A stretch of 64,000 nucleotides of DNA from Perkinsus chesapeaki ATCC PRA-425 (GCA_013115145.1 JAAPAO010000141.1:1-64000); one strand, 5' to 3'. Numbered from the stretch's first letter, positions 18,173 through 40,998 are shown. The notes: generated by a model not told the origin, from the letters alone. A program made the numbers and translations.

Positions 18173-18245
18173 TGAGCCTCGCTGGGAATCGAACCTCGAA
18201 GTTCAGATGTGAAGATGGACACTTTACCTACTGAGCTAAACCTCG
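18173..18245 (-). pseudogene. Full-length (73 nt) tRNA-like pseudogene with A- and B-boxes but broken stems
   Basis: Reverse complement CGAGGTTTAGCTCAGTAGGTAAAGTGTCCATCTTCACATCTGAACTTCGAGGTTCGATTCCCAGCGAGGCTCA. A-box TAGCTCAGTAGGTA and B-box GGTTCGATTCC are at canonical spacing; acceptor, anticodon and T stems do not pair. Confidence 0.6.
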
Positions 18246-18384
18246 ACGGATTCATTACCGAAAGTTGGTAGATAATCGATTATTCTGGCGCGCGCTTCCA
18301 AAGTACGCGTTGGTGAGTGCTGCAGACTCGGCGACCTTATTGTCTCAGCCTATCTTTTATCCCTCTTTGGAGGGTCTTTTTATA

Positions 18385-20975
18385 ATGATACTATCTATTA
18401 ATGATGAAGCAATTGATTCTCCAATAGCTATTAGGACTACTTCAGAGGGAACTGCCATAGTCTTCCAGGTTACATTATTAACACACATTCTATATAGGAG
18501 TATCTTTCTTCAGATTTCAAGCTTGTTAACCTGGCTTCTCAGAATCCTAATACCAATAGTCGTCACTGCTTTATATCTTAAGGTAAAGTTCATCTCATCG
18601 GAGCCTCTCGAATACATTAAATTAGTTCACGAACCACGGAAGAGTCGATGATCGCCGCCGCCGTGATGTGCCGCAAGGAGACTATTTAAACGTTACTACA
18701 GTGAGCCCAGCTCAACCGCGACCATTTGGCAGTCCAACCAGGAGAAAGGTCAGGAGCTGTCTCATTCAGCCAAGTTAACTTAAATTATCAGATTATCCCA
18801 CCTACGGCTTCGTCTCGTTGTAGCTCGAGAGCGTCTCCTGTGACGCGGGGAGTGTATCCAGCAACAAGCAAACCAGCTCGACAGGAGGCCAATCAGAGCT
18901 TGGCGGCTTCTAAGGTAAGGCTTTACGTTACTAATAGAGTGGTAACTCGGTCGGGTAGGATGAACGGCGTAATGACAAAGTACTTGGTAAAGAGGATATG
19001 CTCAAGGGTGTTGGCGAAGGTGGACAGGATGACGCAGGTTCGATCCCGGGTGAGGGCATCTTCAGTTACTAAATGCCCGGTAGAGCTCGAAGGCCTCGGC
19101 ATATCTTCCCAAGCTGAAGTGGCGAGTCGAGACGTGACCTCCAAATCTGATGGTGAGGAATCTTTTCGCACTATGAAGATTCCTTTGAGGTTGGTTTGTC
19201 AGCGTCTGGGTCGACTCCGCCGCCGGGTTTCGAACCTGCAAAGGAAACGCCGGTCGATGGGAACGAAATGAGTAGGGCTGAATCAGGAATAGAAATTAAG
19301 TCCAACTTGTTGAAAGGTTTCACCACGAAAAATGAGAATGCCCGTCGAGCCTTGGAAACCGCGATTGAGCAGTTCCCGACTGAAGTAGGACTTTCGACGA
19401 GACGACTGTTGGTGGATGATGTCGTCTTGACAGGCGGCAAATGTCTGCCAGGAAGTCCTGCAATCCTTGACAATGGAGGGGGTTGTTATTGAGCCACAGA
19501 CGTAGGGCGGAGCGAAGCGTGGCAGGTTTCAACATTTTGTGTCATAACCAGATATGAGGCAATGATTCGCGCGGCTGAGGTATCTGGTGATTCGGAACTC
19601 GCCGGAGTTCTCTTCAATGGTGTTAGTAAGTTAACGTTGGATTTTATAAGGGAAATGTTTACTCTTTCCAGGCATGCTTGTTGGTGGTGACTCTCGGAAG
19701 GGGGATGAGCAGCAGCCCGCCAGGGGGAAGGATGATGAATCTTCGACGATTAAAAGTGATGGGAAGTCTGAAGTAGGCGATGAGTCGCAGGTTCAATCCC
19801 GGGATAGGAGCTTTTTAGGAGGCTGCTGCTGCTTGTCGTGGGCCTGTTGTGGGTTCGCAGTCGCCTCCTGGACTCTCCACTGCAGCAGCTACCCCATTGA
19901 CTTTGGTTCCGCAACAGGAGGGCAAGAACCAAACACCACCACAGATGCAATTGAATGCCAAAGCACCTGAGTTTGTGCCTTCTGGAGGGTATGGAACGGC
20001 CCCGACGACAAGGTTAGTATTTCAGGGATGTGATGGCGCTTCTTTATTATTTCGACTAAATTACATTCTCCTTTTTATTTTTATTATCAACTTCTTGGAG
20101 ATGGTAATTATTAAATCTTCGCCCTCGTACACTTCTCGATCCTCGGAGAAGATCCCTACTACGCTTAGCATTTGTGAACTCTTGACGGTATTCATTAGTT
20201 TCGTGGCGCGCAAGAAATTGGTGGTCCGTGATCAGGTTCCTAGATTCACTGATGGATCATCGTCGTGCTGTGGCAGCTGCAAGATATTATCAGAATCAGT
20301 TTGCGGCGGCTCGATATATGGGAGGGGTAGTCGAGGAGGGCGCGCAGGTTCGATTCCCACTGTCGGTATTTCCAGCTTGCTGCCATGGCCAAAGCTCAAA
20401 TGCAAGCAGTCCAGCTGGCGCAGGCTCAGGGATCTTATATCGGGCGAAACTATCCTAGTGCGCCAGGTAGTGGGGTGCGGGTTTATTGGAGAATAGTTGA
20501 TGATGGTGGTAGTAGGAATGCCTACTATTGAAGGAGATACGTTGGGGGATTGGGCAGCCGCGAGGGCTGAGGAGGAAGCACAGGTAGGCTTCATATCGAA
20601 AAGGCGTGGGTTCGATCCTAGGCAAGGGCGTTTCGTCAGGTGCAAATGCGCGTTAAGAAAATGCTTGAAGAGAAGAATGAGAGAAGTCAGAAAGATCCTT
20701 CTATGAAGGGTAGGACGCCGGGGTGATGGATCGAACCTGGGTGGATGGATCCCTGCGGTGTTCAGTTATTGCTGATTCCTCCAGGGTCGGTGGAGATAAG
20801 ATGAATAATAAGGACGTTAAATGTAGGGTGGATGCGTTGGTTAGTTGAGGGAAATTTGGTAGTATTAGGCAGCAAGAATACTACGGATGGTTCTGAAAGG
20901 ATACCAGTGAAGATTTCAGTTGATGAGCTTAAACAAGCTGATGCACAGAGAAGGAAAGAGCTGCTTGGAATATAG
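18385..20975 (+). CDS. Hypothetical protein with PAM2 (PABP-binding) motif, a PPR-like helix and a possible N-terminal TM segment
   Basis: Spliced exons keep an open frame. LNAKAPEFVPS (~19960-19990) matches PAM2; YEAMIRAAEVSGDSELAGVLF is PPR-like; LLTWLLRILIPIVVTALYL is hydrophobic. Start codon uncertain. Confidence 0.55.
19020..19065 (+). other. Intron (46 nt) carrying a tRNA 3'-end/B-box element, sense
   Basis: gt...GCAGG TTCGATC CCGGG TGAGGGC A TCTT cag; splicing restores the frame GVGE|VTKCP. Confidence 0.8.
19773..19818 (+). other. Intron (46 nt) carrying a tRNA 3'-end/B-box element, sense
   Basis: gt...GCAGG TTCAATC CCGGG ATAGGAG C TTTTT ag; splicing restores KSE|EAAAAC. Confidence 0.8.
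20327..20375 (+). other. Intron (49 nt) carrying a tRNA 3'-end/B-box element, sense
   Basis: gt...GCAGG TTCGATT CCCAC TGTCGGT A TTT ccag; splicing restores YMGG|LAAMAK. Confidence 0.8.
20584..20639 (+). other. Intron (56 nt) carrying a tRNA-Leu-like 3'-end/B-box element, sense
   Basis: gt...AGGC GTGGG TTCGATC CTAGG CAAGGGC G TTT cgtcag; splicing restores EEAQ|VQMRVK. Confidence 0.75.
20710..20765 (-). other. Intron (56 nt) carrying a B-box element, antisense
   Basis: Forward ggatcgaacctggg = reverse complement CCCAGG TTCGATC CATCACCCCGGCG. Confidence 0.65.
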
Positions 20976-21157
20976 ACCGTAGTAAAGCGGGGATGGCGGA
21001 GCGAAGCGATTCATGTTTGGCATTTTTCAGATTTTGAATGATGTTTATGATTACTGAAAAACCTTGATAAAGTTCCTGTGAATTGCCAGCTGTTATAAAA
21101 AAGAAAGTAAAAAAAGATGAGAAGAGAAGAGTTGTGTCTTCGAATATCTTTCATTAT

Positions 21158-21171
21158 TGCACGCGTGCGCA
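21158..21171 (+). promoter_or_regulatory. Candidate promoter element (reverse complement TGCGCACGCGTGCA) upstream of the Maf gene
   Basis: tgcacgcgtgcgca lies ~190 nt upstream of the ATG at 21357. Confidence 0.45.
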
Positions 21172-21356
21172 AATTCTTGCGAGTGCGCATTGTGTGTGAT
21201 GGATGAAGATATGTTGCGGACGGCGCTGTATGAATTGGGTAAATGTTAATATAGCCATCTCTCTAACAAGAGCATGAGCTAATGACGTGTCTAAGAATTC
21301 ATATCATTGTTGAGTTTTAAAGTTATGTTATAATTGTTGGGTTGCATTTAGTCAAT

Positions 21357-23025
21357 ATGAAATTGCCCTTGCCAGAAGCCTCAGTGAGGCTGCAGGAGTT
21401 GCTGTGGACGAATGATGTTGTTTTGGGTAATATTGGATGGGGAGGGGATCGAACCAGGGACCTTTGGATGACAAATCAGAATCTGAGAGATTGCGAGATT
21501 TTAAATAGGTGGGAAAATTTTACTTCAATTGACTCTGTTGAATTTGATATTGGTTTCTTTATTGCAGGGAGTCGGTCGTTGGGGCGGAGAAAGGTTCTTG
21601 ATGGCTGCGGGTGCCGGTACATCGCCACGATGGATCCAGCGATAGATGAGAAGGCGATACGAGGGACTACGGCAGAAGTGAGGCAGATACGGCAGCGTGT
21701 TAGGAGTAGAATATGGAATTATATTTATTATTTACTGTGCTATATTTTTGTGAAATCTGTCCTTTCGTGAAATGCACGCACAGTAAAATTTAATGTTTTT
21801 AAAAGGAGATGAGCACATACCCGATATCGATGATATTAGTTATAATATATTAATAATTATTGTTGATTGATGAGCACTAGGTTGGAGTTCAGGAGACGTG
21901 TCTGGCAGTGGCTAGAGGAAAAGCAGATGAGTTGGAGAGACGGTTGAAGGGGAAGGATGTGTTGTTGCTGTGTGCGGATCAGGTGGGTCTGGCTGAGGTG
22001 CCGGGTTCGATTCCTGGTATGAGCAGGTAGCGGTTTGTGATGGAGAGATGAGAGAGAAACCGGAAAGTGCGGACGAGGCCAAACGGTAGAGGTTCTGGCT
22101 ATTGGAGGGAAAAGTTCTTTGGAATTTTGCTTGAGTTGTTTATTCCGGAAAAGGAGATGTATCACTAATAGTTGTAGGGTTGTGGATGATGTGTAGAAAT
22201 CTCTACAGGGACTTGGAGATGTTGGTATGTTTTCATCACTGTCATCGGTCAAGTCTGATTGGTAAATATCTTTGATAGGTTTATTAAAGACTACTCTGCT
22301 GGTAAAGAAGTTGTAACTTATACAGCATTGGTGTTGATTGACTGTAAGGATGGTCGAAGTGTGGAGGGGGTACATAAGGCAGCTACTTGGTACTGATGGT
22401 TGGGTAACCTGATATAAAGGTTCATTTCCAACACTGATTTACTATTGTTATATAGGGAGATAATATTTATACTCATCCCTTGTAGTGGAGGTTTAGTGCG
22501 GGGAATTGGTTGGCAAACATTCCTCGAAGTGCAATTAATTTGTTATTTGTGGATTATGGAGAATGCCCCTCCTGCCTCCCTCCTTAATTTGTTGAATGCC
22601 CCTCCCTCCTGCGGAGTTTGCTTTTTAATAGCATCCTTCGGTGTGCTTTTAATCATGATAACCAGTCGACTCTGTGTAGATAGACTTTCCAATCACTTGA
22701 CTATTTTCATCGAAACATTATATCGCAGTAGTCCAGCAGGATATAGCCCTCCGCTCTGAAGCGTAGCAGCCCAACCTTCGCAGGTTCGATCCTATCCCGG
22801 AGGATATAATAAATAATATTATCGCCAACAGCAATTGTTTAGTGTATCGATGTGCAGGTAGTTTCTGCATAGACGATGTCATGGGCCCGGTAGGTTACAA
22901 TAAATCTTGCAATCTTTGCGAATCTTGCATTTCCTCAGTTTGTCAAAAGTATCGAAGGCGGCAGTGACAGTGTAATGGGGTTACCTTTGGGGCTTCTCCA
23001 GGAGCTATTAGAGAAGATTCGATAG
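21357..23025 (+). CDS. Maf-like nucleoside triphosphate pyrophosphatase (Maf/YceF, m7GTP/dTTP type)
   Basis: Spliced: NDVVL|GSRSLGRRKVLDGCGCRYIATMDPAIDEKAIR ... CLAVARGKAD ... LLLCADQ|VAVCDGEMREKPESADEAKR ... CAGSFCIDDVMGP|FVKSIEGGSDSVMGLP...KIR*. All Maf motifs present. Confidence 0.9.
21427..21567 (-). other. Maf intron (141 nt) carrying a tRNA-Phe-like 3' half, antisense
   Basis: Reverse complement ...CCAAAGGTC CCTGG TTCGATC CCCTC CCCATCC A next to the donor; splicing creates the conserved LGSRS. Confidence 0.85.
21983..22026 (+). other. Maf intron (44 nt) carrying a tRNA 3'-end/B-box element, sense
   Basis: gt...GAGGTG CCGGG TTCGATT CCTGG TATGAGC Ag; splicing creates the conserved ADQ|VAVCDG..REKP. 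Confidence 0.88.
22763..22831 (+). other. Maf intron (69 nt) carrying a B-box element, sense
   Basis: gt...TTC GCAGG TTCGAT CCTAT CCCGGAGG A; splicing restores SEA|NCLVYRCAG. Confidence 0.7.
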
Positions 23026-23053
23026 GAGAAGCTCATACCGGCATTTTCTCATT

Positions 23054-23067
23054 TGCACGCATGCGCA
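23054..23067 (+). promoter_or_regulatory. Candidate promoter element (reverse complement TGCGCATGCGTGCA) upstream of PAP
   Basis: tgcacgcatgcgca lies ~235 nt upstream of the PAP ATG. Confidence 0.45.
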
Positions 23068-23120
23068 AACCCGATATGATGTTTCTGTTGTGCAGCCAGA
23101 GTCGAGTTTAGTTTATCGTG

Positions 23121-23152
23121 GTTACCGGGTTCGATTCCCAGGTGGGGCACCA
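23121..23152 (+). other. tRNA 3'-end element ending in CCA, upstream of the PAP ATG
   Basis: GTTA CCGGG TTCGATT CCCAG GTGGGGCA CCA. Confidence 0.65.
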
Positions 23153-23299
23153 ATTAAGAATGCCTCCGGATTAGGGCAGATTATCTATGCGGTTATTGAA
23201 GGGACTATTGAATACGTGAACTACCGGAGATGGAATAATGCTGAGTTATTAATATTTCCATCATTACACTTCTCCTTAGGTTTCCCTCTGCCTTCTTTA

Positions 23300-28553
<5,254 letters not shown>

Positions 28554-28708
28554 AATCTTATCAACCTACGAGTGTTGCGCTGAAGCTAACCTAATTAGTA
28601 TCCTTGGAGTGAAATCGATCAGATGATCGATATGTGCTTTGTAGTTGTTATTGTGTTTTTGTCTCTATGTCTTATAGAGTGTGAGTTTGCGTGCTGCTGA
28701 ATATTATT

Positions 28709-31700
28709 ATGATGCGACAAAGTGAACAATTGATAGGGAATGCTCGACGGTCGGGGGGCAAGAGGTCACGCCGACGACGACCAAGTCGGTCTCGAAGTGT
28801 TGCTGGACTTAATGATAATTCAAAAACGACGACAATGAATAGACTGGAAAAAATACAAGAACAATTGGAGTTTTATGTAAGTATCTTAGGTTGAACCATG
28901 CAAGATACGAAATGGGTTCATTTTTTTAGTTCTCGGATGCGAATCTCCGTCGAGACCGCTATATCACTGAGGAGCTTGCACAACGAGATGTGCAAGGTGA
29001 CGGTCAGCCTTGGGTGCCAATCGATGATATAATTGAATGGGGAGAGCTCAGAAAGTTAGGGTAAGAGTCACGCGCCGCAAAATTAAAAAAGTGATCCTGG
29101 TTTTTCAAGTTCGGTGGGATTTTGTGAAATTAAATTTCCGAAAAAACTAGATGTATTTTTGCAAAGAGAACCTTTAGAAAATTGCAACTTCTCGGTAGCA
29201 TCATAAATCATGTTTCAGATGCACCGATACAGAGCTACTCGCAGCTATTAATAACAGTGAAGTGCTCGAACTAAGTGAGAGAGAGTAAGCAGCATATCTT
29301 TACGCACTGTAAAGATTTTTATGCTTTAGTGGCAAGCGCTACGTGAGCCGTAATTTCCGACTCTACCCGATGTTGGGGAACATTGTTATCGATGGGCAAG
29401 TCGCCGATTTCGAACGGCGGACGGTTTACATGGAAAATTTGCCGTTCAATGTTAATAGGGAGATGATGAGTAAGCGAGAAGAGTTGGGGAACAATAACCC
29501 AGTGATAGATAGTTCGATCGATCGGATACTTACATAGAACTATATTTGAAATGCATTAAAATTTCCGGGCCAATTTCAAGAGAGCGGTCACTTGTTTAAG
29601 CCGGTAATTATTGCAGTCTGGTTGCCTCCAAGGCTGGTCAACACACTTAGAGAAATTAGTCGTAGAAGATCCAGTAAAGGAGCCCGAAGCTCTGAATAAA
29701 CGGATATCTTTTCGCCGTGTTCTTTCTTCAGAAAGCGTGGCGTCCGGTGAAAAGTTCGGATTTGCTGTGACGGTTGATTATATCGCATTACCGAGTCATC
29801 CTCGAACGGGTAGGAGAGTAATGCATGGTGCCGGGATTGAACCCGGGTGGTGGTTTTCAGGTGTCAATCTAGGGTATTGTTTTGTTGAATATAATACAGA
29901 GGAGGAAGCACGGACAGCAAAGCGACAGTTAGACGGTAAGTTTGAGGAACTAGGAAAGATATTTTTGAGGTTGGAAATATATTACCCGTATACTCGTAGG
30001 TAACGTAGGGTTTTGGAAGTATTGTGATCTACCGTATGCTATATCACTTGGTATTGTATCATCCCCATGTTATGATTTTTTACCACGTTCGGTGGGTGTT
30101 GTCTCGAATAAAAGGCCGGCTTGGACAAAGCTACACTCATTTTCCACCGTCCCATTAGCTACGGAAATGTCTCTTGCAAAGCGTAAATGTATTGGTGATT
30201 TATTGGGTTATTTATTCGACTTTTATGGTACAAATAGATCGTTTTCCTACTGTTATTTAAACCAAGCTATGTTCGAAGCTTGTTAAACACTTTTAGACTT
30301 CATTTTTATTTGATCAGGCAAGTGGCCTAAAGACTGGGAGATCAGATCTGACGGTCGAAGGTTGAGGGTTATTACAGGTGGAAAATTTAGATATTTGCGA
30401 GAGTTATATTACAAGTAAAATGCCAAGGGCGGGGATCGAACCAGGGACCTCTTGGATGTTAGGGCGAAGAATGTGAATAAGATTGATAACCACCACTCAT
30501 ATGCGGATACATTCGATCCTAGCAAATGGCTTGTCCCTGACATTGACGGGTAGGCGTGGGTTCGATCCCGGCACCTGTCATTTTAATTATAGGAGATCTG
30601 AAGATAGCACTAGTACCGTTCCACCGTCTGGGCAAGTACGAGACGAAGATGGTCGGAAACGACGGAAAATGGAACCGAATGAAAGTAGGGAAAGTAGTTG
30701 CGATTGGAAGAAAATATTTTGCTCAAGTTGAATCGCCGGAGGATTCGTGCAGTTCTTCTTCTGCCCACATAACGATTAGCTCTTCCTCGACTTCAAGTGA
30801 TACCGAATCCTCATCCTCTTCATCGAGTTCGTCAAGTAGCTCATCTTCTGACACCTCTAGCTGTACCTCTTCGACCGACTCGGACACCCAATATGGTGCG
30901 GGTGTGGTGCCAAAACCACAGGATGATATTTTCAGCTATGCCGATACGGTAAGTTGGATTTTTGAAGAAGAGGAATTGTCGCCATTCTTTTTCAGAATGA
31001 GAAGATTAAACAGGAAGTCCCTTCAGTAATACGAAAGCTTTCGGTAGGTGGCACGAAATCGATCAATCGGGCGAGCGCTTTTTACACTCAGTTATTGCAT
31101 GTAAGCGGATTGCCGCCGGTGAGTTTACTGCAACTTCGTCAATGGATGGGGCATAGTACAGTGACACAGCACGTCGATATACGGCCGCCGAAAGGAGGTA
31201 GGTTTGGCAGAGGTCGTGGGTTCGATCTCCGCCGAGGGTATTTTTCAGATCGCGGAGGAAATAATTGGGAAGCTTATATAAGATTGCGGAGCAAAAAAGA
31301 ACGAGACTTCGCTGCTATGGATCTGAGGTAAGAAAGATATTTCTTAGGTTAGAAAATGATCAAGTTATTGCTCAGCAACACGGGGCCTTTGTTGACTGTG
31401 AACGGCTCTGTTCGACCTGTAATTAACAAGCTTGATGGAGCGGAGTGCGCGGTATACTGGAAGGAGGTAGGAGTCAGAGGATATCTTGGGTACCTACTCG
31501 CGACGATAGGAAATTATATATTCGACGTTCCCACTGCGCACCGCAAGGGGGACAATTTGTGTGATACTGTGATTCTGAGTAGTAATAAGTATTACTCCTC
31601 CTCGCCGAGTTTTTCACCGAATCATTATTGGGATATACCAATGGTGACGCGAGAATGCTAAATTTTCCGGAATTTTCCCCGTACATTTTCAGGAAGATTT

Positions 31701-32596
31701 ATTTCTCCGCCGACATGTGGTCTGTGCACGTAACAATAATTTATCTATTCTTCCGGGTGCGCAAAGATACGTCTCACAGGTGATGGCAATGAAGAAGGAG
31801 AACAGAGAGGCACCACCGGCAGCAATACCATCGAGAAGATTCAAACCGGCAAAAGAATCTGTCCACATCGTGAGTCGAACCTGCGACCTTTAGGGTGAAA
31901 TGTATGGATGTTATCTATTCAGCCATTTCCGCGGCTTACGGGCGGTCCGCGAGGAAGCGATGATGACGGTGCTGGCGGTAAGCCAACGGCGTGGACGGAC
32001 GCTGCCAGCGGGAATAAGGAATGGAGGCAACCAGGAACCGGAAAGCTGTGAGTTTAAAAATGACATGTGCCGGGATTGAACCTGCGTGGCTGTTGTTTTC
32101 AGATACGGTCTTAGCCAGACAGAGCGTCGATGTGCAGCACATCTGGAAAGGGTTGGCATTCAATCGCTTGTTGATAGGATGCGGTTGCAGCAGCAGCCAC
32201 CACCGAGAGGCAGGCGGAGACCAGCAGGAGGGAGCATTGCAGGTGGTGAGACAAAAACGCTGTTAACTGGGAGTGATTGGCAGCTTTGTTGGACAAACCC
32301 CTCAACATTTTGTGGCGCGTGAGAACTACAAGTTGTGTACCATCTCGCAGCTTCGTATGCTGATGATACATTTTAAACGATATTCAGCGAACTTCAGTAG
32401 ATCTGCTGATACACGGTGGTATCATACATGATTCTCGCGCGCCACGAAATGGGTAACTGCATTACTGTCAGGAAGCATTCGTACAGGGCTCTCGGCTAGG
32501 ACTCAGCGTCGGAGCGGAGGGCCGGCTCGGTTTCCAGGACCGATCATGGCCTCGGGAACAGATGTGCGTCATCAAGGTGGACGATATAAACGGTGA
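28709..32596 (+). CDS. La-related protein, LARP7/p65-like (La motif + RRM + C-terminal xRRM); 3' end approximate
   Basis: KIQEQLEFY|FSDANLRRDRY (La motif); RTVYMENLPF and HPRTG|VNLGYCFVEYNTEEEA (RRM RNP2/RNP1); HVSGLP...HVDIRP...EAYIRL...KLDGAECAVYWKE (xRRM-type YW helix). Confidence 0.82.
29810..29860 (-). other. La-protein intron (51 nt) carrying a tRNA-Gly-like 3' end, antisense
   Basis: Reverse complement CCGGG TTCAATC CCGGC ACCATGC A; splicing creates RNP1 G|VNLGYCFVEY. Confidence 0.88.
30415..30522 (-). other. Intron (108 nt) carrying a tRNA-Phe/Cys-like 3' half + terminator, antisense; donor GTAAAA
   Basis: Reverse complement CCAAGAGGTC CCTGG TTCGATC CCCGC CCTTGGC A TTTT AC. Confidence 0.82.
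30550..30592 (+). other. Intron (43 nt) composed almost entirely of a tRNA-Leu-like 3' end + terminator, sense
   Basis: GTAGGC GTGGG TTCGATC CCGGC ACCTGTC A TTTT aattatag; splicing restores PDIDG|RSEDS. Confidence 0.85.
31198..31248 (+). other. Intron (51 nt) carrying a tRNA 3' half + terminator that serves as the pyrimidine tract, sense
   Basis: gt...GAGGTC GTGGG TTCGATC TCCGC CGAGGGT A TTTTT cag; splicing restores PKG|DRGG. Confidence 0.87.
31870..31922 (-). other. Intron (~53 nt) carrying a B-box element, antisense
   Basis: Reverse complement CTAAAGGTC GCAGG TTCGACT CAC; an alternative in-frame donor at 31861 would include the full 3' end. Confidence 0.72.
32048..32102 (-). other. Intron (55 nt) carrying a tRNA 3' end + terminator, antisense
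   Basis: Reverse complement GCAGG TTCAATC CCGGC ACATGTC A TTTTT. Confidence 0.82.
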
Positions 32597-32725
32597 TGTG
32601 CATGCGTGCAGATTTACGTATTTCATACCGACTTTTCCTCAGACGTTTGCGGAATCATCTCGTAATGCAATTGATTCGGTCGAAAAAACCTATCCCGCCT
32701 AGTAGCAGATTTACAGCACAGGTAT

Positions 32726-33552
32726 ATGGGCGTTGAGGAAATGTAAGATTTGGTAAGATGGCAAGATTTCAGGATTATCTGGCGGCCGAGAGATCATTGA
32801 CTTGGCGACGAGCGAGGGACGGATTGTCTGGCGAACGCAAGAGAGATGATGTGAGATTGGTAAAAGTGGAAAATAGGCGATAGGGATGGCGCAGGTTCGA
32901 TCCCGGGAGAAGGCATTTTTAGGAGAATCTTCTCCCAGTAAATCAGTTGTTCGTAGCCCAAATGGATATAGTCAGCAAGGAGAGGTAACGAACAAGCGAC
33001 GCGGGTTCGATCCCGGCATCTCACACTTTTAGGGAGCGCTATCTGAGTCTGTGATTGGGTCTAGAAAACGAAGACAATCGTGGGAAGGTCAGCGAGGGTC
33101 CAATCGACCGAGGAAGAGACAACGCCGCAGTGGGCAGAAGAAGAATAGTGCAAATCCGGGGTGGGATTTCACGTTAGACCGGATGGCTTCGTTATGGGAG
33201 CCTCTCATTCATTTATGGGGACATTTATGGGGCTTGTGTCTGAAGAGAGCGCAGTTTCAAGTCTAATGTCTCGGTAGCCAGAATAAATAGCTATGTTGTG
33301 AGGATCGCGAACATTCATCGGAGTTTTCTCCCTGTGTCCGCTGACATGTACATTGTTGGAGGGTCGATATTTATTCTGACACCTCTAGCTGTTTATTTTA
33401 GACCCGCAAGATTGACTGTGGAGGCAGCAGAGGCCGGTGAAACGAGGCAGGCGACGAGAGCGAACGCTCGAACGAAGGGGAGAAGGGAGAGAAGGAAGAA
33501 GCAACAAACAGCGATTCAGGAGGAAAAGCTGAACCGGCAACGATTGTTCTAG
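32726..33552 (+). CDS. Hypothetical basic protein (reading frame across exons uncertain)
   Basis: Several short exons separated by GT-AG introns; Arg/Lys-rich 3' exons. Confidence 0.4.
32851..32922 (+). other. Intron (72 nt) carrying a tRNA 3' end + terminator at the acceptor, sense
   Basis: GGC GCAGG TTCGATC CCGGG AGAAGGC A TTTTT ag. Confidence 0.8.
32985..33032 (+). other. Intron (48 nt) carrying a tRNA-Ala-like 3' end, sense
   Basis: GAC GCGGG TTCGATC CCGGC ATCTCAC A CTTTT ag. Confidence 0.8.
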
Positions 33553-34669
33553 TTGTGCACTTTTTACAGTTTCTATTAATCATTATCATCATCATACTGT
33601 GTTGCTACTTCGTTCAATAATAAAAGTAAAGTCTATTGTATATTCTACTCGACAGAGACAACTGAGCGGGGGCGAGTAGAACCTTAACTTATTTCCTATC
33701 GATAAGAGTAACAAGTTACTAGGGCAGTGTTTGCCGGTAAGGTAATTGTGATGCAAACTCAGAGCCAGTGTTAAAGAACTTGGCGAATTGGTGAAGAAAT
33801 TCAGCGCCCAATAGATCCCGAAGGTCGGATGGTGTTCGACCTGTATAGTCGCTGGTGATTTCATACGACTGGAGGCCTTAGACAGGAAATGTGTTTGGAA
33901 TCCTGGTTTCAGTAAACTGTGTACTCGGTCGGGTATATAGTGTTATATAGATGATTATAACGAGACCTATTGCCTACCATTTTGTTATTATCAGTTTGCT
34001 GTTAAGTGTGATTAGTACAACTACCTCTATGTAAAATGAGTAACAATACTTCTTATAATTCAAAGGCGTTCGGTTCGCATCTACAGCGTTTTAAGTGTCG
34101 TATCATCGCCTGCTTGATTGAACCAGAACTGCACCGTTTAAATACGTTGGATTGAGTTGTCTTTTGTATTGCAGGCCGCTTGAAGGAACGAGTTCTCTAT
34201 AAATAGATACTTAGTCTGTCGATGTGTTAACCAAGTCATCTTAGAATCATTTCTTACTGCTATATCACTCCTACATGTTAGTGGTTTGTCTTTAATGTTT
34301 CTGAGGGTCTGTTTCCTTCATTCTTCTTCTTCATCATCAACTGCTATGATATCCCCACTAACTCCAGTGTCGAGGGTTGGATATCGAAGGATATACAGAG
34401 GTCAGTGATACAAGGAAGCTACTCTAGCTCCGTCAACATCTGCAGTCCCTACTTCTGATTTCATCGTCCTCCATAGCAGAGCTTCTCTTTGCTGCTCACA
34501 CCTACTCTTCTCTACTGTAGTCCCACGTTGGTTTTTATACGGAAGGCCTTCCCGTATTTTGCAAACCACGCTGCCACACGTATCCTAGTTATTTGTATTT
34601 TATGCTTTCTACTCGATAGCTCTTTAGAATCCTAATCGTTCCACTATCGCGGGTATCTTCAATGTTACC

Positions 34670-37600
34670 ATGGGAAGGACTGTAGCGTTTCGTGTGTTCG
34701 CCATCCGCGCGTAGGTGTTGCCAACAATTTACTCTTTAGCATCCTCAAGATTCCAAGCCCAGATGCATCCTTCTGAAGCTCGACCGCCGAAGTTCATAAT
34801 ACCACCGTTCGAAGGAGACTATAAAAAAGTATATAAACATATGTGGAGGACCTTTAGGGTGAGAAGTGGGGACAAAGGGAAGTCAATCGATGCCTTGGAG
34901 CGTTTCATTGGTAACTATTATTATGGTACATTCATGCTTATCAATACCGCCTTCCTATGCTTTATTTCTCGGAAGTTCTCCACAATTATCTTCAATTCTT
35001 GCATCCTATAGTTTCAGGAACGTAAGAAGCTTCGTCTCGGCGTACTTTGCAATCCGCCTCATGGAGCTGCCAGTGAGCTTCCCGACCCGAAGGTGCTCAG
35101 GGATTGTAAGGCGCAGGTTCGATTCCCGGTATTGGCATTTTTAATAACAGATGAAGTGGCCCCGACATGCTATAGAGCAGCTGAGAGCCAGATTGTCGAT
35201 GATGAGTTTTGGCTGCAAATGTGTGAGAGGATACGTAAAAGCAAGGACACCTTATCTGTATCGGACATTGCTGCGGTGAGTGGGGGGACACGTCCAGATG
35301 CTCCCCGAAGGGGGAGGAGGGGGACTGCATTTTTTCATTATCACATTTCCACATCAGCCATTGATGATAACATTTCTGTGAAGCCGGTGAATCACTGAAT
35401 ATATACCCGCTACTGTCTGGAAGAAAATTGAGAGAATTCTCGTCGAGTTTTCGCATCACAGATTTCCCTATGGCGGTGCTTATACCAACACTTACTATTT
35501 TAATAAGGGGACGACGACACTCCTTCTCACATACTGAAGCATACTTGAGCCAGGAGGAAGGCTTTACTGGAAGTGTTGTTAATCTTCGCTCTTCACTATG
35601 GCTTTCTGTTGAAAACGTTATACAATTTCCTGCTTATTTAAGTTAGTAAAGTTGACTCGTTTTATCAGATATTGGATTCGCTTGTCATGGTCAACTATCG
35701 TGACACCGATCTGATGAGGATATTAAGTCGGGAAATAATAGATGATATGTTTAAGCTCACCTTCACCGAAGCTGCAGTAATTGATAAAATCTTTATAGCG
35801 CGTAATGGCGTATCTTTCAGGTCATAGTGAATGCATATAGTACATTTAATTGTGAATCGAAACCTCTCTTGGACGCAGCAGTAAAACACTGTCATGCTTT
35901 AGCAGCAATGAACAGGAAAGGAAATGATGTTAGAAGTTGTGCGGTGAGTTGAAGGGTAATTGGTATATACCGTATCATCATTCTCAAGTACCCGGATTCC
36001 TAAAACCACGATAAATGGTTCGGGTCTCTTAGGTTTTACTCTCTGGTTTGGCGCGGTTCAAACCTGAGAATGCAAAGGAGTTGGTAGAAGTGATACTCTC
36101 ATCAACAGCATTGAATGCAGCAGAAGGCGGTAGGTGTCGGGATCGAACCTGGGACCTTTCGATTACGAGTGCTTATCAGGCCTTACCGATCTGGCATCGA
36201 TTATTTCTAGTGCGGCTCGACTGCTCACCGAGGAGGGACAAACTACTGTGAAGGACGTCGAGGAGAGCGTACTAGCTGATATAAGTAAGCATCACATGCG
36301 GGGATCGAACCAGGGACCTTCCGATTCTCAGATTCGATTCTCGATCGGATATGTCTTTCATCCCCCGAAAGCCTTTACAGTGCGGCGAGCGCTTTCCATA
36401 CGTTAACCTTATTTGATGGGATTGTTAAAGATACCCCCGAGATGATGGAAGCAGCTTCGAGAAACGTAACCAACTCGAACGCACAGCGCTTCAATTTCAT
36501 CTCGATAGTTCCTGGTTGCGCTGGAGCGAGATCCGAATGCTTTACGAAGCACAGTACCCGGACCGATGCCGAAACTGCGGCTCAATAAACAAGTATAAGT
36601 TTGCGTCATAGCGCGGTTATACTATCCTGCCAGCCGCCTGCTCGACGAGATCCTCCTGAGGGGCCGGAGGAGTTGATGAGAGTTGGGTTCAGCGCTGAGA
36701 GGGCTGATGAGGAGGATGTGGATGGTATGAATGTTGAGCTAGAAGCTGAAAACGAAACGGAACAACAACAAGGCGAGGAGGTGAGCGGCAGCAGCTACTG
36801 TGTAGATATGGTATTGGAAATGAAGAGGCTTATTGCACCATTGGAGAGTCACTCTTTCAGTCGGTGAACGAATCATCGGAATATTCGCCTTCGTTGAACT
36901 ATTACCTAGAGAACCTCATTATAGTAACAATAGCACTCGAGTACTATGACGAAATTATGTTATGAAACAATTATAGAACGCCACAGGACAGCTCATCCAG
37001 CAGGCTCCAGTTACTACGTACTCCTCGAAGTGTAATTCAGGTTGTAGTTGAGGGCATGTCCGTCCTTGATGCCACATCGACAATGGGCCTTGGACAGGAG
37101 GATGAAGAAGAAGTTAAAGATGATGATATTATACTACATAAACTCCAACGAGAACGTAGCTTTGGTGAAAGGAAATACTTTATAACATCACGAGCAGGCA
37201 CGCCTCATTTAACTAATAAAAATAAACCAACCGCACCGATAGAATCGATTGCTGCTCGAAACAGAGTAGCTTCGGTTGTTGCAATTGCAGTTGGTAGTCT
37301 CGGTCGGATCTGGACCCAACTGAATAAGGACATTGAAGATCCAGACGAAAGCAAGAAAGAGGATGAGGTGATGGGTGAGTTTTCCAGGCAACTCTCGAAA
37401 GCTTCTAACTTTACTGTTTTCAGTGCCTCAGCGATTGGTGACGCCAGTTGAGACCGAGATGCTTGCGAAGTCTGAAGAAATTATAGCCTTTGGTTGCCCG
37501 GGGCTCACTTCGGCACAATTAGTGAACTGTTTTGAAACGTAAAAAGACAAAGTGTTTTTAGCTGCTGCCGTTTATTGCTGATTAGGTTAGCACTGCACAC

Positions 37601-37787
37601 GCCACACAAAACTCATCATCGAGTGCTAAATGCGATAAGCAATGAACTCGTGAGGAAATGGATACATTTGACGGCGGAGGAAATACGAAGACTAGAAAAA
37701 GGAATTGAAGCTTCCAAGCTGAGGAATCAACAATTATCATTCATGTTGAGAATGCATTCTAATAGACGTAAAATAGCAATGCCATGA
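34670..37787 (+). CDS. Multi-exon hypothetical alpha-helical repeat protein (HPR/RAP-like, presequence-like N-terminus)
   Basis: MGRTVAFRVFAIRA...; DEFWLQMCERIRKSKDTLSVSDIAA; LTDLASIISSAARL; HRVLNAISNELVRKWIHLTAEEIRRL; stop at 37787. Confidence 0.5.
35106..35150 (+). other. Intron (45 nt) composed of a tRNA 3' end + terminator, sense
   Basis: GTAAGGC GCAGG TTCGATT CCCGG TATTGGC A TTTTT aataacag. Confidence 0.85.
36130..36179 (-). other. Intron (50 nt) carrying a tRNA-Thr(CGT)-like 3' half, antisense
   Basis: Reverse complement CT CGT AA TCGAA AGGTC CCAGG TTCGATC CCGAC. Confidence 0.82.
36285..36331 (-). other. Intron (47 nt) carrying a tRNA 3' half, antisense
   Basis: Reverse complement CTGAGAA TCGGA AGGTC CCTGG TTCGATC CCCGC ATGTGAT G CTT AC. 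Confidence 0.82.
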
Positions 37788-38640
37788 TAATGATGTTGTT
37801 GGTCCAAGAAATGTTTCTGATATCATCTGATTTGATTTCTTCATTGAAGAGTTGAGAATTGTATCAAACGAATCCGATGCCGAACCGATAGATGCCATCA
37901 AACAATACAACACACCATCAACAATATTATAATTAGTAGTGTAGCAAAAATATATTATTGAGAGTATAACCACATTACAAATTGAGTCTATTATTGCATA
38001 CATCTCAAGAAGCTTCTAGCACCTATCACGAAATATAACGAGGCATTGACATCGCCATAGGTAATTGAATAATGAATATGGTTTATAATCGTTAAAAGTC
38101 CATTTCATCAAGTATTGTTACGGTACATAGAGTTAACCGAAACACATAATAAAAAGGAACAATGCTCATATGGAACAGCAAGGACAATAGTAATCCTGAA
38201 ATCTGGCCTCATGCTGCTGTCAAATGAGCTTTCGGTGCTGAACCCTTCTGGACACAACGCATTCGACTATTGCCAAAGGAGCTGTAATAGATAACATAAA
38301 TCGGACAAGAGAAAGTGTGTCAAAGCAACGATACAACCATACAATGTTGACGATACAATTTCCCTAGGGAGTGTTATCAAAGCGGATTATTACACCAATC
38401 AAGCAATGACGAGCTATCCCACTGCCAGACCTGTTCTATGACCAATTATAACAGCTATACAGGAGTAAATAGTGTACTTGATAGAAATACAAAGATTAAA
38501 GCTATAGCCTATTATTATAACTGATGATAACACAAGATATTATAAAGCAAGAGGATATCGCTTTCTAACCAACAGAGACAATTAACCATCATCAAACTGC
38601 TGTAGCTATTCCAACGCCAAAGCAAGCATCATCCCAGCGC

Positions 38641-38849
38641 TTATCGGTACCTATTAATAACAATAGTAATACACACTTTTGAGAATAATATTACTTGTGG
38701 AAACCAATATCGTTGGCCTTCTCCCTGAAGCACTGACGGCACATCATGAGACCGTACTTACGGATAAGACCGTGCTGGTTGGAGCATACACGGCATTGAC
38801 GAGAGCCAGGGCCGTAGTTACGGGGGCGAGTCATGTAGAGATCCGGCAT
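38641..38849 (-). CDS. RPS29: 40S ribosomal protein S29 (uS14), 54 aa, 2 exons
   Basis: Exons 38849..38695 and 38650..38641 encode [52 protein letters not shown]|YR*, with the CxxC...CxxC zinc motif. Confidence 0.97.
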
Positions 38850-38899
38850 AGTGATGGTAGTTGGCTAGCGAACTCTCTGATACAGCAATAAATAAGTCG

Positions 38900-40998
38900 A
38901 TAACCTACTATGTATCGAGCAAGCCTCAACCTCAGATACCACCTCCCCTTGACCTTCCCGATGTTCGAATACCATGCCCTATTCCCTCCCAAAGCTCCAA
39001 CGCACCGACGATCACCCGAGAGGCCTTCGAGCACGCCCTAGATGGAGCCAATCGATCGCGCTATAGCGGCAGAATTCTCGCTGAGTAAATGCAAGATTAC
39101 AAGATTTGTAGGCTCACCATGTGATCAATTCGGCGCATGACGATTCTTGTTGTTGAATGACCACTCCTTCATCTCGGTCTGTTATTGAGGACCTTCATCG
39201 TTCCCGAGGAAGGAGCTTTAATCGGCATAGGAATACCGAAAGGAGGCCGGTGAGTAGCTGCAGGAGTACCTATAACTAGGGAGATGCAAAAGCCGCCCCG
39301 AATTCCCTTAAAATGACGAGGGCTTGAGAGTGTCCAGTCTTATATGAAGTATTTTGTTATTAGAGTGCGAATCGTGGGGAGTTCCGCAGTGGCCCGGCTG
39401 ATGTATTACCACATGATGGGGAGCGAATGATGTAATAAATATAAATATAATAATATAATAGTCATTAATAGGGAACTGCCAGCTTATCGGCGAAGGAGAG
39501 CTGGAGGCAGGAATGTCTATTGTAATTCTGTATTAAGGGTTAATGTGTTATCGCTGTATTAGTGTATCCACAACCGGAGGCTTATGGTCGAGTGGCTGCT
39601 GCTTGTATCGGCGAATTTATAGATTTAGAGGAAATAAAAACTGGGTGGAACATAGTTAAAAACGGAGACAGAGATAGTTGTAGGGAGTATCTCAGCTTGA
39701 ATCGTGCAAGATACAGAATCGCTCAGATAAGGGTCCTGCTGCTGGACTTGTCGGTGGAGATCTGATCTCAGACGCAGTGTCAATCGAGAAGAAAGTGATG
39801 CAATAGCTTTGTCACGCGCCTAATAATTCCTCAGGTGCTCTACTTGACCGTTTGCGCCAATAACCTCGATTGTTATCTATTCTCATTTGGATGTGTAGTA
39901 GTCTGGGGAGCATCGGATAATCAAGTAAAACAACCCTCACTGGGATTAGAACCCACGGCCTTTTGCAGGTCGGCACGATACTTGACCTCGTTAAGCCATT
40001 AGTCCGTAAACCTCTAGCTCACCCGGAGCAAGACTTCATGCGTTACACCACTGAGGTGAGCCGAATTCCCTTTTCATAACATTAAAATTTGGTCAGCCTC
40101 CTGCAAGTGAAGACAACAATTCCGACACCCCTGGCGCAGCTGCTGCTGCTGGTCATCACCCATCTCGTCGTCCAATAGCACATGATAATATACGATTATC
40201 AGCATCGGGAGGCTGGAGGTTATAACACTCTCGAACATTTAGATAAACTATATTTCAGTTCTCTTATGGAGCGGCTGGCCCATAGCTACTCGTTGGCACA
40301 GAGTGTACGTGTTGATTCCTTCGAGACCATGTTAGATGGCGCCATTGAAAGTAGTAATGACAAATATAACATATTATTGAAGGATAGGGACAACTGATGT
40401 ACCCGAAAGAATGACACGTACAGGAACGGTTGGAATAAAAAAGAAAGAAGTTGCAAGACGAGTAAATATAAAACGACAATTCATGATAAATATTTTTAAC
40501 TATTCAGATGGGAAATTTATTTGTGCAAAGATGCGATTTGAACGTCTACAGTGATATACTTGGCACACCTGATGTGTTTTGGTGAGGGCAACAACCGGAT
40601 AGGAAGGATTGAGGAAAGGCAGGTTTTGGTAGGGACTTCGATGAATATGAAACTGTTTATGACAAATCAAGACGATATATGGACATCAACAGACGGGTGG
40701 AGATACTGAATCAGGTTAGTACAAGAATTCTTGCGGATAACCTCCTATCACCAATGAACTCAAGGGTTAAGCCAGTACACATTATATTACCATCTTATTA
40801 GCGTATGGAAGTACTGAACGATATGTATACGATGATTCAAGAGGAGCTACACGTCGCTCACGGTAACAAGCTCGAGGTGATGATGATGATGAGACTGTTT
40901 CATTTATTCTTATTCAGATTTGGGTCATCTGGCTCGTCGCTGTTGATGCTATTGTAATCGGCTTGGAACTGTTTCTCACGTATTGGCGCGAATTCTAA
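38900..40998 (+). CDS. RMD1/RMND1-like DUF155 protein (start codon uncertain)
   Basis: FSFGCVVVWG; ERLAHSYSLAQSVRVDSFETMLD; GNLFVQRCDLNVYSDILGTPDVFW; YMDINRRVEILNQ; MEVLNDMYTMIQEELHVAHGNKLE; WVIWLVAVDAIVIGLELF TM segment; stop at 40996-40998. Confidence 0.88.
39925..39968 (-). other. DUF155-gene intron (44 nt) carrying a tRNA 3' end + terminator, antisense; donor GTAAAA
   Basis: Reverse complement AAAGGCC GTGGG TTCTAAT CCCAG TGAGGGT TG TTTT AC; splicing restores WGASDNQ|VGTILDLV. Confidence 0.78.

Follow-up and report, generated by a model that had tools for sequence, protein, structure and literature searches.

The DNA analysed here (the window) is a 64 kb stretch of Perkinsus chesapeaki sequence. 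It contains a block of six neighbouring genes in which about a quarter of the tiny introns are largely the tail of a tRNA gene. The gene names PAP, La, RRM, PAM2, Maf and DUF155, given in an earlier reading of the DNA (the sequence-only reading), all hold, and the La-like gene has Pfam matches to RRM_1 and La. That reading had also claimed a tRNA 3′ end with a B-box in about 22 introns. We found 18 exact matches to GGTTCRANYCC in the window, compared with 0.33 expected and a maximum of 2 in 100 shuffles, which bears out the observation. All 18 are confined to 18185-36311. The looser GTTCRANYC has 27 matches in the window, 23 of which fall in 18–37 kb.

A family profile was built from 55 aligned copies, with the ceiling of shuffled sequence (8.9 bits) as the cut-off. 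In the 64 kb window 26 sites scored above it: 1668(+), 6766(-), 39925(-) and 23 sites in 18170-36324. There were no sites in 7–18 kb or 40–64 kb. The clustering of 23 of the 26 copies in 18.2 of 64 kb has a binomial p of 3e-10. Inside the block, ∼21 of ∼75 predicted introns hold a copy, versus 3 of ∼73 outside (Fisher p = 8e-5). The copies lie inside GT-AG introns of + strand genes in both orientations, as had been stated; with respect to the host genes, ∼12–13 run sense and 11 antisense.

The consensus of the 55 copies is ARAGGTC-CCN-GGTTCGATYCC-NG(C/G)-NNNN-GGC-A-TTTTT, comprising the variable loop, T arm, 3′ acceptor strand, discriminator A and T-run. Every copy corresponds to tRNA positions ∼44–73 followed by a T-run, which matches the anatomy proposed before, with its terminator-like end. 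The T-run comes immediately after the discriminator in 33–41 of the 55 copies. A-box-like motifs were found upstream of 6 of 24 copies, compared with 3.4% of random 70-mers. The element copies clearly derive from tRNA genes. Neither ARAGORN nor Rfam called any of them a tRNA gene, including at E≤10. Nor did the 55 copies show an excess of T-stem pairing at 49-65, 50-64 or 51-63 (shuffle p = 0.48, 0.68 and 0.93). Without covariation in the T-stem, a tRNA-like fold is therefore not maintained. Paralogous copies have only the core (∼20–35 nt) in common.

The longest tRNA-like copy (18164..18241, - strand, 12.8 bits) is at the left edge of the block, upstream of the PAM2-protein gene. It carries an A-box-like TAGCTCAGTAGG (at -43) and the B-box GGTTCGATTCC, and neither ARAGORN nor Rfam called it a tRNA. 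Sense elements (+) occupy PAM2-protein gene introns of 46 nt (19020..19065, 27.0 bits, 5′ boundary less certain), 46 nt (19773..19818, nearly all element and ending in ...GCTTTTTAG), 49 nt (20327..20375) and 56 nt (20584..20639, profile-supported). The B-box at 19020..19065 is retained in the orthologous introns of P. olseni (51 nt) and P. marinus, and that at 19773..19818 in orthologues of 53 and 52 nt. Three species conserve the junction NQFAAARYMGG/LAAMAKAQMQA at 20327..20375, where their introns measure 49, 68 and 68 nt. The B-box at 20584..20639 is decayed in both P. olseni and P. marinus. The antisense element (-) of another 56 nt intron of this gene (20710..20765) includes a 23-nt block, GGATCGAACCTGGGTGGATGGAT, that is identical in P. 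olseni and lost in P. marinus.

The first Maf intron (21427..21567, 141 nt) has an antisense element (-) at its 5′ end (21442-21468) and is spliced to VVL-G/SRSLGRR; its orthologues in P. olseni (54 nt) and L009 (57 nt) have no intact B-box. The 44 nt Maf intron at 21983..22026, with a sense element (+), gives CADQ/VAVCDG, and its GGTTCGATTC (at 22004) is identical in P. olseni and L009. Some sites of the sequence-only reading had to be reassigned or dropped. The site at 22783, which had been called intronic, belongs to a doubtful B-box-like copy, GGTTCGATCC (22778..22794, +, 10.6 bits), and makes up the opening 10 nt of a coding exon of Maf (RFDPIPED...; Pfam Maf positions 126-157). The sites at 18186 and 23128 are placed upstream of coding regions, outside validated introns, and the profile gives no support to a copy at 36055.

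Between Maf and the PAP start codon is a sense element (23125..23152, +) in the 5′ UTR, an outron or intergenic DNA. P. olseni and P. marinus keep its GGTTCGAWTCCC upstream of PAP, and L009 keeps it after Maf. A 53 nt PAP intron with an antisense element (24337..24389, -) is spliced to LFTFG/SHRLG. The T-run, as its reverse complement, gives this intron the 5′ splice site GTAAAA, and the B-box is retained in L002, L004 and L005. The PAP intron at 25100..25499 (+), with a sense element at 25104-25137 and the spliced product DDRSVR/CVNGTRV, is 400 nt in the window and 46 nt, nearly all element, in three other lineages. In the La-like gene, a 51 nt intron within the RRM (29810..29860, -) holds an antisense element and is spliced to HPRTG/VNLGYCFVEY. 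This intron is 46 nt in P. olseni, and the element is retained in L009.

Further along, the 48 nt intron at 30415..30462 (antisense, -) has the 5′ splice site GTAAAATGCC, a 3′ AG that is the reverse complement of anticodon-loop C32-U33, and a conserved junction, KFRYLRELYYK/AKNVNKIDNH. The 46 nt intron at 30550..30595 (sense, +) has GGTTCGATCC identical in P. olseni and L009. At 31198..31248 (51 nt, sense, +) the junction is QHVDIRPPKG/DRGGNNWEAYI, and the P. olseni orthologue is 73 nt with a partly decayed B-box. The 5′ splice site GTGAGT of the 53 nt intron at 31870..31922 (-) is within the antisense B-box region; the P. olseni copy is at 17247-17269. The antisense element at 32048..32102 (55 nt, -) has the junction KEWRQPGTGKL/YGLSQTERRC. 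A sense element of 27.8 bits (32884-32921, +), ending in GGCATTTTTAG, lies in an intron with tentative boundaries (32851..32923), and an intact B-box was not found at its P. olseni counterpart. Cross-species junction comparison supports a 48 nt intron at 32985..33032 (sense, +) and, in the helical-repeat gene, one of 50 nt at 36130..36179 (antisense, -). The helical-repeat gene also has a 45 nt intron at 35106..35150 (sense, +; junction ELPDPKVLRDY/EVAPTCYRAA; 51 nt in P. marinus) and one of 47 nt at 36285..36331 (antisense, -; junction conserved; 47 nt in P. marinus).

Outside the block, the 44 nt DUF155 gene intron at 39925..39968 (-) carries a decayed antisense element (GGGTTCTAATCC, 16.4 bits), and the P. 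marinus copy is likewise decayed. An outlying copy at 1668..1704 (+, 20.5 bits), within the region of a - strand thioredoxin-domain gene, is conserved in P. marinus, 3′ flank included. Another in that same gene, at 6766..6790 (-), scores 10.8 bits and has orthologues in P. marinus (27.4 bits) and P. olseni (24.5 bits). The array had been described as bound to one interval. This is true of the 23 copies in 18.2–36.3 kb but not of the two conserved thioredoxin-gene copies at 1.7 and 6.8 kb.

The element segments are spliced, as had been claimed. At 16 element introns the junction peptide is conserved in P. olseni or P. marinus, and the intron lengths differ by non-multiples of 3. The annotated PAP proteins of these two species run uninterrupted across the positions of three element introns. 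The T-run end of the element is a splice site in both orientations. In at least six sense copies the 3′ splice AG is exactly 19 nt past C62, and several antisense copies use GTAAAA (TTTTAC reverse-complemented) as their 5′ splice site. Many of the introns of 43–56 nt are indeed mostly filled by the element. Their short length is not special, because element-free introns of this genome are also 40–55 nt. At 20609, at 21446 and in PAP intron 2 of the window the B-box has decayed and the intron persists; the element is therefore not required for splicing.

We compared the window with the syntenic loci of P. olseni, P. marinus and a fourth lineage, and found the B-box at the same introns and in the same orientation in all of them. 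Four-fold degenerate sites served as the neutral rate. Their identity to the window is 0.36 in P. olseni, 0.42 in P. marinus and 0.37 in L009, and 0.50 between P. marinus and P. olseni, although differences in G+C between the genomes may exaggerate this saturation. Retention was scored as a B-box with ≤2 mismatches at the same intron and orientation (chance ∼0.037 per site). It was observed at 14 of 19 sites in P. olseni (p = 9e-17), 10 of 13 in P. marinus (p = 1e-12) and all 5 comparable intronic or intergenic sites in L009. The B-box is thus conserved among orthologues beyond the neutral expectation set by four-fold sites that are 36–50% identical between lineages. Since it has stayed intact across at least four Perkinsus lineages while silent sites were randomised, it is a selected element.

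Ungapped identity is 0.6–1.0 at 10 core positions, with the minimum at the degenerate positions 57 and 59, and 0.25–0.35 beyond -10 and +27 of the same introns. The peak coincides with B-box positions 52–62. Sense and antisense copies are retained about equally. Conservation that peaks at the core, a T-stem without covariation and equal retention in both orientations point to a sequence-specific DNA site, and the sequence evidence favours selection on the B-box at the DNA level. Weak conservation continues past the B-box: upstream it takes in AGGTC, and downstream the acceptor strand and the T-run. The P. marinus and P. olseni versions of a thioredoxin-gene copy agree at ∼86% of positions over 35 nt. 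Selection may therefore act on a unit larger than a B-box.

We propose that the copies are ancient tRNA-gene fragments that now serve as selected double-stranded DNA sites for the B-box-binding module of TFIIIC, a reading on which our judgement of the sequence evidence is evenly poised. Ancient tRNA gene pieces, from the variable loop to the Pol III T-run, now fill most of many short GT-AG introns in the block; they plausibly arose by insertion, after which the T-run came to serve in splicing. The T-run end supplies the polypyrimidine tract and AG in sense copies and the GTAAAA 5′ splice site in antisense copies. The elements have ceased to be tRNA genes, and purifying selection acts on the base sequence of the B-box, along with a few bases next to it, whichever strand carries it. 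Each copy would be an extra-TFIIIC (ETC)-like site that lacks a Pol III gene, and the block would then carry ∼20 such sites in 18 kb. TFIIIC is the putative reader, and its binding might have a boundary or architectural role, or might modulate Pol II passage through the host genes.

Unrelated motifs of 15–20 nt are conserved in other short PAP introns (AATCGATCACGTGATCGATT, AATTTCGTGGCGCGTGA and others). The introns of these compact genes thus seem to harbour conserved motifs in general, intronic conservation is not specific to the B-box, and another factor could read the B-boxes. The extended motif AGGTCCCNGGTTCGATYCC would then be one of several Perkinsus intronic cis-regulatory motifs for an ordinary transcription or chromatin factor, and conservation does reach a few bases 5′ of the canonical B-box. 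We consider this rather unlikely. The invariant G52, G53, T54, T55, C56, A58 and C61 are B-box consensus positions, the variable 57 and 59 are its degenerate positions, and the derivation is visibly from tRNA genes, whose established reader is TFIIIC. It is similarly doubtful that the element acts as RNA, either as a protein-binding site in pre-mRNA that influences splicing or intron fate or as part of a short Pol III transcript that terminates at the T-run and yields small RNAs like tRNA 3′ halves. Sense and antisense copies are different pre-mRNA sequences yet equally conserved, no tRNA-like fold is kept, introns outlive the B-box, and Rfam and ARAGORN give no signal. What fits an RNA role is the T-run, which antisense copies keep despite the non-consensus GTAAAA site, together with the upstream A-box-like motifs and the weak conservation of the acceptor part; independent Pol III transcription may occur from either strand.

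The copies could also be an introner-like mobile element or its neutral relics, spread locally, creating introns by T-run plus AG and decaying without function. The largely filled introns of 44–56 nt, the fixed AG spacing, the GTAAAA sites and the decay of some copies in one lineage agree with this. In addition, none of 14 Perkinsus PAP introns is common to Vitrella or Prorocentrum, and these introns were therefore gained in the Perkinsus lineage. Against it, the core is intact at orthologous copies in four lineages with silent sites near saturation, and there was no recent spread, as paralogues have only the core in common. We saw no case of intron presence versus absence between the compared lineages, no target-site duplications on inspection of exon flanks, and, by profile scan, no detectable derivatives in other introns of the window. 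We therefore regard this explanation as distinctly improbable, although only its lack of function is contradicted; an insertion origin fits TFIIIC sites too. The tRNA-derived introner of the sequence-only reading survives in its tRNA-gene origin and its T-run at the splice site, but the copies are ancient and orthologous and thus not a currently mobile introner. Because the copies are close together (23 in 18 kb), gene conversion among them, or from tRNA genes, could mimic selection by keeping a 20-nt core uniform, and strong conservation is limited to that common core. Such concerted evolution without function is very improbable. The isolated copies at 1668 and 6766, 11–17 kb from the block, are conserved in two or three species with their copy-specific flanks. 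Orthologues have in common copy-specific variants that conversion would erase, for example GGTTCGATTC, found at 22004 in three lineages, and the GGTTCGAATC that precedes PAP. The common tract is also very short for conversion, and alignments suggest that copies group by orthology, not by species.

Budding yeast ETC sites, fission yeast chromosome-organising clamps (COC) and human ETC or Alu B-box sites consist of a B-box alone, with no functional Pol III gene. Their primary sequence is conserved between species, either orientation works, and they are sometimes clustered. As putative TFIIIC sites, the Perkinsus elements resemble them in all these respects. They differ in lying within, and mostly forming, 44–56 nt spliceosomal introns of protein-coding genes, in their density (∼20 in 18 kb across six genes) and in retaining the whole 3′ third of a tRNA gene, terminator included. 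We know of nothing comparable described in the alveolate lineage, and a literature search found no published description of such intronic B-box elements. For ETC/COC-type sites the search turned up PMC5356446 and PMC7014570.

As in introners, a repeated family forms whole introns and the element ends are splice sites. Introners are present in numerous, almost identical copies that are specific to a lineage and were inserted recently, and these often carry terminal inverted and direct repeats (PMC7789003). The Perkinsus copies, in contrast, have only ∼20–35 nt in common, are orthologous across deeply diverged species and under selection, and show no terminal repeats. The introners in this comparison are those of Micromonas, Aureococcus and Amoebophrya and the fungal introner-like elements. 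SINEs retain a tRNA-like 5′ head that includes both the A and the B box, followed by a tail that is LINE-related or rich in A. The Perkinsus elements, like tRNA-derived SINEs and tRNA pseudogenes, come from tRNA genes and have a B-box, but they consist of the tRNA 3′ part together with the T-run terminator of that gene. The A box is mostly gone from them, and neither a tail nor a target-site duplication is seen. Genes for tRNAs that are nested in introns of protein-coding genes are known in animals and plants. These too are intronic and in either orientation to the host gene, whereas the Perkinsus elements have no tRNA fold and no ARAGORN or Rfam call, in introns too short for a whole tRNA gene.

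The sequence-only reading had further suggested that an intronic array of TFIIIC sites defines a chromosomal domain. A selected DNA-level B-box is favoured by the sequence, but "defines a domain" exceeds the data, because copies occur outside the block, gene order varies and other introns carry other conserved motifs. Within the block, gene order differs between lineages and the elements remain with their genes. P. olseni has no copies in the 12 kb and five genes directly upstream of the PAM2 gene and 17 copies from that gene onward, and the high-density block begins at the same gene in the window and in P. olseni.

The B-box consensus GGTTCGANTCC is matched by the elements, and the pattern GGTTCRANYCC had 18 exact matches in the window against 0.33 expected, all of them at 18185-36311. 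A looser B-box pattern gave 27 matches, 23 of which lie within this region. When the copies were aligned on the motif, the common part was the 3′ third of a tRNA gene, with the variable loop AGGTC, then the T arm, a 3′ acceptor strand that ends in GGC, the discriminator A and finally a T-run. The family consensus is ARAGGTC-CCN-GGTTCGATYCC-NG(C/G)-NNNN-GGC-A-TTTTT. We built a family profile from 55 aligned copies and took the best shuffled-sequence score, 8.9 bits, as the threshold. The profile found 26 sites above this threshold in the window: 1668(+), 6766(-), 23 sites within 18170-36324, and 39925(-). No site exceeded the threshold at 7-18 kb or 40-64 kb. The excess that the sequence-only reading had reported is thus borne out, and the shuffles rule out a chance or compositional origin of the motif. 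One of its sites, at 36055, has no profile support. The sites are clustered (binomial p = 3e-10), and copies are carried by ∼21 of ∼75 predicted introns in the block (18.2-36.3 kb) compared with 3 of ∼73 outside it (Fisher p = 8e-5). The elements are not limited to one interval, as had been proposed, because copies also occur outside the block, including those at 1.7 and 6.8 kb.

G53, T55 and C56 are identical in 55/55 copies, and G52, A58 and C61 in 54/55. The constant bases G52, G53, T54, T55, C56, A58 and C61 are the fixed B-box positions of GGTTCRANYCC. A T-run adjoins most of the 55 copies on the 3′ side. An A-box-like motif, TRGYNNAN(1-3)GG, was found within 70 nt upstream in 6/24 copies (B-box at 18186, 19037, 20347, 30559, 32894 and 33004) compared with 3.4% of random 70-mers. 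Some of these motifs fall within coding exons and may be partly chance. A perfect TAGCTCAGTAGG at the right distance is present only upstream of the B-box at 18186.

ARAGORN called no tRNA genes in the window or in loci L001, L002, L004 and L005 (the last three from P. olseni, P. olseni and P. marinus, respectively). Rfam gave nothing at gathering score in the window and no tRNA at E≤10 over 17-41 kb. Among the 55 copies, the T-stem pairs 49-65, 50-64 and 51-63 are formed in 47%, 71% and 35%, which is no excess over column shuffles (p = 0.48, 0.68 and 0.93, respectively). True or split tRNA genes were rejected on these negative ARAGORN and Rfam results, the non-complementary acceptor strands and the absence of T-stem covariation. 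In a known tRNA-derived SINE, a tRNA-like 5′ head that includes the A and B boxes is joined to a body and tail, and target-site duplications are present. In contrast, the copies hold only the 3′ part of a tRNA and share no body or tail, which sets them apart from such a SINE, and inspection of the flanks revealed no evident target-site duplications. A role of the B-box as branch point was also rejected, because yUnAy fits neither strand and the introns outlive B-box loss.

The gene models were made with a small dynamic-programming gene finder using splice-site matrices together with cross-species evidence. Its training set was the introns that conservation with a syntenic Logan contig had defined, and tblastx of related loci guided it at a later stage. 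Exons were mapped by exact spliced matching; tblastn fused exons over in-frame introns. Minus-strand models within the block are artefacts of the gene finder. On the + strand the order is the PAM2-motif protein gene, Maf, PAP, a La/RRM gene running into a hypothetical gene, and the helical-repeat gene; the DUF155 gene follows a - strand ribosomal protein gene. Pfam matches and the annotation of related loci are concordant and support the identities first given to the PAM2, Maf, PAP, La/RRM and DUF155 genes. A PAP exon of the window has 95% identity to a P. olseni protein, and the only matches of a 509-aa ORF were one Logan and one P. olseni protein (46-49% identity). The window was accordingly assigned to a Perkinsus species. 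Exact look-ups of this ORF and of protein P0004 returned no match. The match of protein P0006 in the representative search, a WD40 protein, was spurious.

At 16 element introns compared with P. olseni or P. marinus, the junction peptide is conserved and the intron lengths differ by non-multiples of three. For example, the introns are 49, 68 and 68 nt long at the junction NQFAAARYMGG/LAAMAKAQMQA, 51 and 46 nt at HPRTG/VNLGYCFVEY, and 45 and 51 nt at ELPDPKVLRDY/EVAPTCYRAA. The annotated P. olseni and P. marinus PAP proteins are continuous across three PAP element introns. Splicing of the first Maf intron (21427-21567) joins VVL-G/SRSLGRR. These 16 junctions and the PAP proteins support the view that the element segments are spliced introns. 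Three sites need to be corrected as to position: 22783 lies at the beginning of a Maf coding exon, and 18186 and 23128 are both upstream of coding regions. Ordinary introns in this genome are also 40-55 nt, so the short length of the element introns is normal; their unusual feature is the element that fills them.

The ends of the element supply or adjoin splice sites. In sense copies, which have the orientation of the + strand host genes, the 3′ splice AG comes after the T-run (...TTTTTAG), and in at least six copies it lies exactly 19 nt past C62 (...GCATTTTTAG). Several antisense copies have GTAAAA as 5′ splice site, which reverse-complements the T-run plus AC; two of these have a 3′ AG that likewise reverse-complements the anticodon-loop C32-U33. 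Element and intron therefore largely coincide. Several element introns, including 29810-29860 and 21427-21567, lack in-frame stops, and the length of one is divisible by three. Gene finders that are naive or ORF-based can therefore read through such introns and insert peptides like GAGIEPG and GSNQGP, which matters for annotation. Stop codons are often absent from the element introns.

Orthologous copies were collected from a 3.4-kb ‘P. olseni’ contig (L002), the syntenic 24 kb of P. olseni contig JABANP010000031.1 (L004) with its leftward extension (L008), the syntenic 23 kb of P. marinus GG674496.1, and a 4.9-kb Logan contig (SRR12548988) of a fourth lineage, L009. The fetched loci hold 17 copies in P. 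olseni, 13 in P. marinus and 6 in L009. Nearly all fall in the introns that carry the window's copies, and in identical orientation. The B-box, with no more than two mismatches to GGTTCGATCC, is kept at 14/19 window sites in P. olseni and 10/13 in P. marinus, where chance is ∼0.037 per site (p = 9e-17 and 1e-12, respectively). Four-fold degenerate sites have 36%, 42% and 37% identity to the window in P. olseni, P. marinus and L009, and 50% between P. marinus and P. olseni, which indicates that silent sites are near saturation. At these sites P. marinus and P. olseni are closer to each other than either is to the window. Set against such silent sites, the B-box is conserved between species beyond neutral expectation. 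The ungapped identity of window and P. olseni copies is 0.6-1.0 over ten core positions, with the minimum at 57 and 59, the two degenerate B-box positions. It is 0.6-0.7 in AGGTC and ∼0.35-0.65 in the acceptor part, and drops to 0.25-0.35 beyond -10 and +27 in the same introns.

The B-box is lost in single lineages at some sites, and in every such case the intron itself is still present. At 20609 and 21446 the B-box is intact in the window only and the introns persist elsewhere. The three other lineages retain the element in PAP intron 2, which in the window measures 415 nt (24568-24982) and lacks it. Another PAP intron of the window (25100-25499) is 400 nt long but 46 nt in the three other lineages, where it is nearly all element. 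These enlarged introns of 415 and 400 nt are 46-88 nt in P. olseni and P. marinus, and one of the two lost the B-box element during expansion.

The block is dense in all lineages compared and starts at the same gene, the PAM2 gene, in P. olseni, where the 12 kb and five genes directly upstream of it hold no copies. In P. marinus the PAM2 gene, PAP and the helical-repeat gene adjoin, with Maf, La and the hypothetical gene absent between them, and in L009 La directly follows Maf without PAP. Elements remain with their introns in these rearranged gene orders. The proposal of a dense array that forms a chromosomal domain holds in part: the cluster is present in all lineages, but gene order is variable and copies occur outside the block. 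As judged from these alignments, the array is best described as a conserved high-density cluster, short of a demonstrated chromosomal domain.

The elements had also been proposed to be an introner-like element derived from a tRNA. Splice sites supplied or abutted by the element (...TTTTTAG; GTAAAA) fit this origin, but the evidence does not support an active introner. The core consensus is all that paralogues have in common, and the many near-identical copies that would mark a recent spread are absent. The acceptor and flanking parts match between orthologues and differ between paralogues. Moreover, every comparable element intron has an intron at the matching place whether or not the B-box is intact, and no presence/absence difference between lineages was seen among these introns. 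Nor are all Perkinsus introns decayed copies, because ∼70 other predicted introns have no profile score above 8.9 bits. Amoebophrya introners, which carry inverted and direct repeats and non-canonical splice sites (PMC7789003), are a different kind of element. When PAP (window 23300-28553) was compared with its Vitrella (L006) and Prorocentrum (L007) counterparts, none of the 14 Perkinsus intron positions was shared with the introns of Vitrella (8) or Prorocentrum (11), which implies a wholesale turnover of introns in the three lineages. Introns with and without the element are alike in this respect, so the outgroup comparison cannot separate the two classes.

Because T-stem pairing is no better than in shuffles, a tRNA-like fold is not maintained; it is the primary sequence that is constrained. 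The lineages keep sense copies about as often as antisense ones. In the host pre-mRNA the two orientations differ in sequence, whereas in double-stranded DNA they are one and the same site. Given a primary-sequence constraint, both orientations and the fixed B-box positions, the simplest reading is that the copies are a set of extra-TFIIIC (ETC)-like, putative TFIIIC sites. Another factor may be the reader, as conserved motifs of several classes seem to reside in Perkinsus introns. A larger selected unit, with Pol III transcription or another RNA-level role, has some room left by the retained T-run, the A-box-like motifs upstream of some copies and the weak conservation beyond the B-box. Gene conversion among clustered copies could mimic selection. 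However, conservation of the isolated copies at 1.7 and 6.8 kb includes the flanks particular to each, and copy-specific variants are common to orthologues.

B-box-only TFIIIC sites are chromatin organisers in yeasts and mammals. The copies resemble such sites in the conserved primary sequence of the B-box; they differ in being clustered, inside short spliceosomal introns and from tRNA-gene 3′ ends. We know of no comparable sites in alveolates, or of sites built into spliceosomal introns, and full-text literature searches returned none that describes elements of tRNA-like or B-box type within Perkinsus introns. We regard as rather improbable a fuller scheme in which the block would be ∼20 TFIIIC-bound B-boxes derived from tRNA genes, one per short intron over a series of neighbouring genes, acting as a conserved architectural or boundary unit or as a Pol II brake, where the fragments would have seeded the introns and the Pol III terminator become the splice-site pyrimidine tract. 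If true, such a scheme would tie the promoter elements of Pol III to the origin of introns and to chromosome organisation in an alveolate. Perkinsus species matter as parasites of oysters and clams, and to our knowledge almost nothing is known of their gene regulation. The locus offers ∼20 orthologous sites per species in at least four Perkinsus lineages, with natural losses as controls. Three questions thereby become open to direct test: does TFIIIC play a conserved part beyond Pol III transcription in this group, can introns arise from tRNA-gene fragments, and why do tiny Perkinsus introns keep conserved motifs at all?

The two ‘P. olseni’ loci, L002 and L004, differ at 14% of four-fold sites and 14% of PAP residues, so the deposited assemblies may include divergent haplotypes or cryptic species.

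Inside the last PAP intron, 28197-28297 is an AT-rich array of ∼4 head-to-tail and inverted copies of GGAAATTTTGTAAAATTTCC, for which Rfam gave microRNA-family matches only, weak and sub-threshold. The PAP introns 26409-26459, 27337-27382 and 27446-27507 have their own 15-20 nt blocks conserved across species, e.g. AATTTCGTGGCGCGTGA. PAP intron 9 (26776-26823) contains the palindrome AATCGATCACGTGATCGATT with a CACGTG core, which is kept in four Perkinsus lineages. The core GATCACGTGATC reappears in an unrelated intron at 56.2 kb (56189-56236), giving 2 matches against 0.25 expected.
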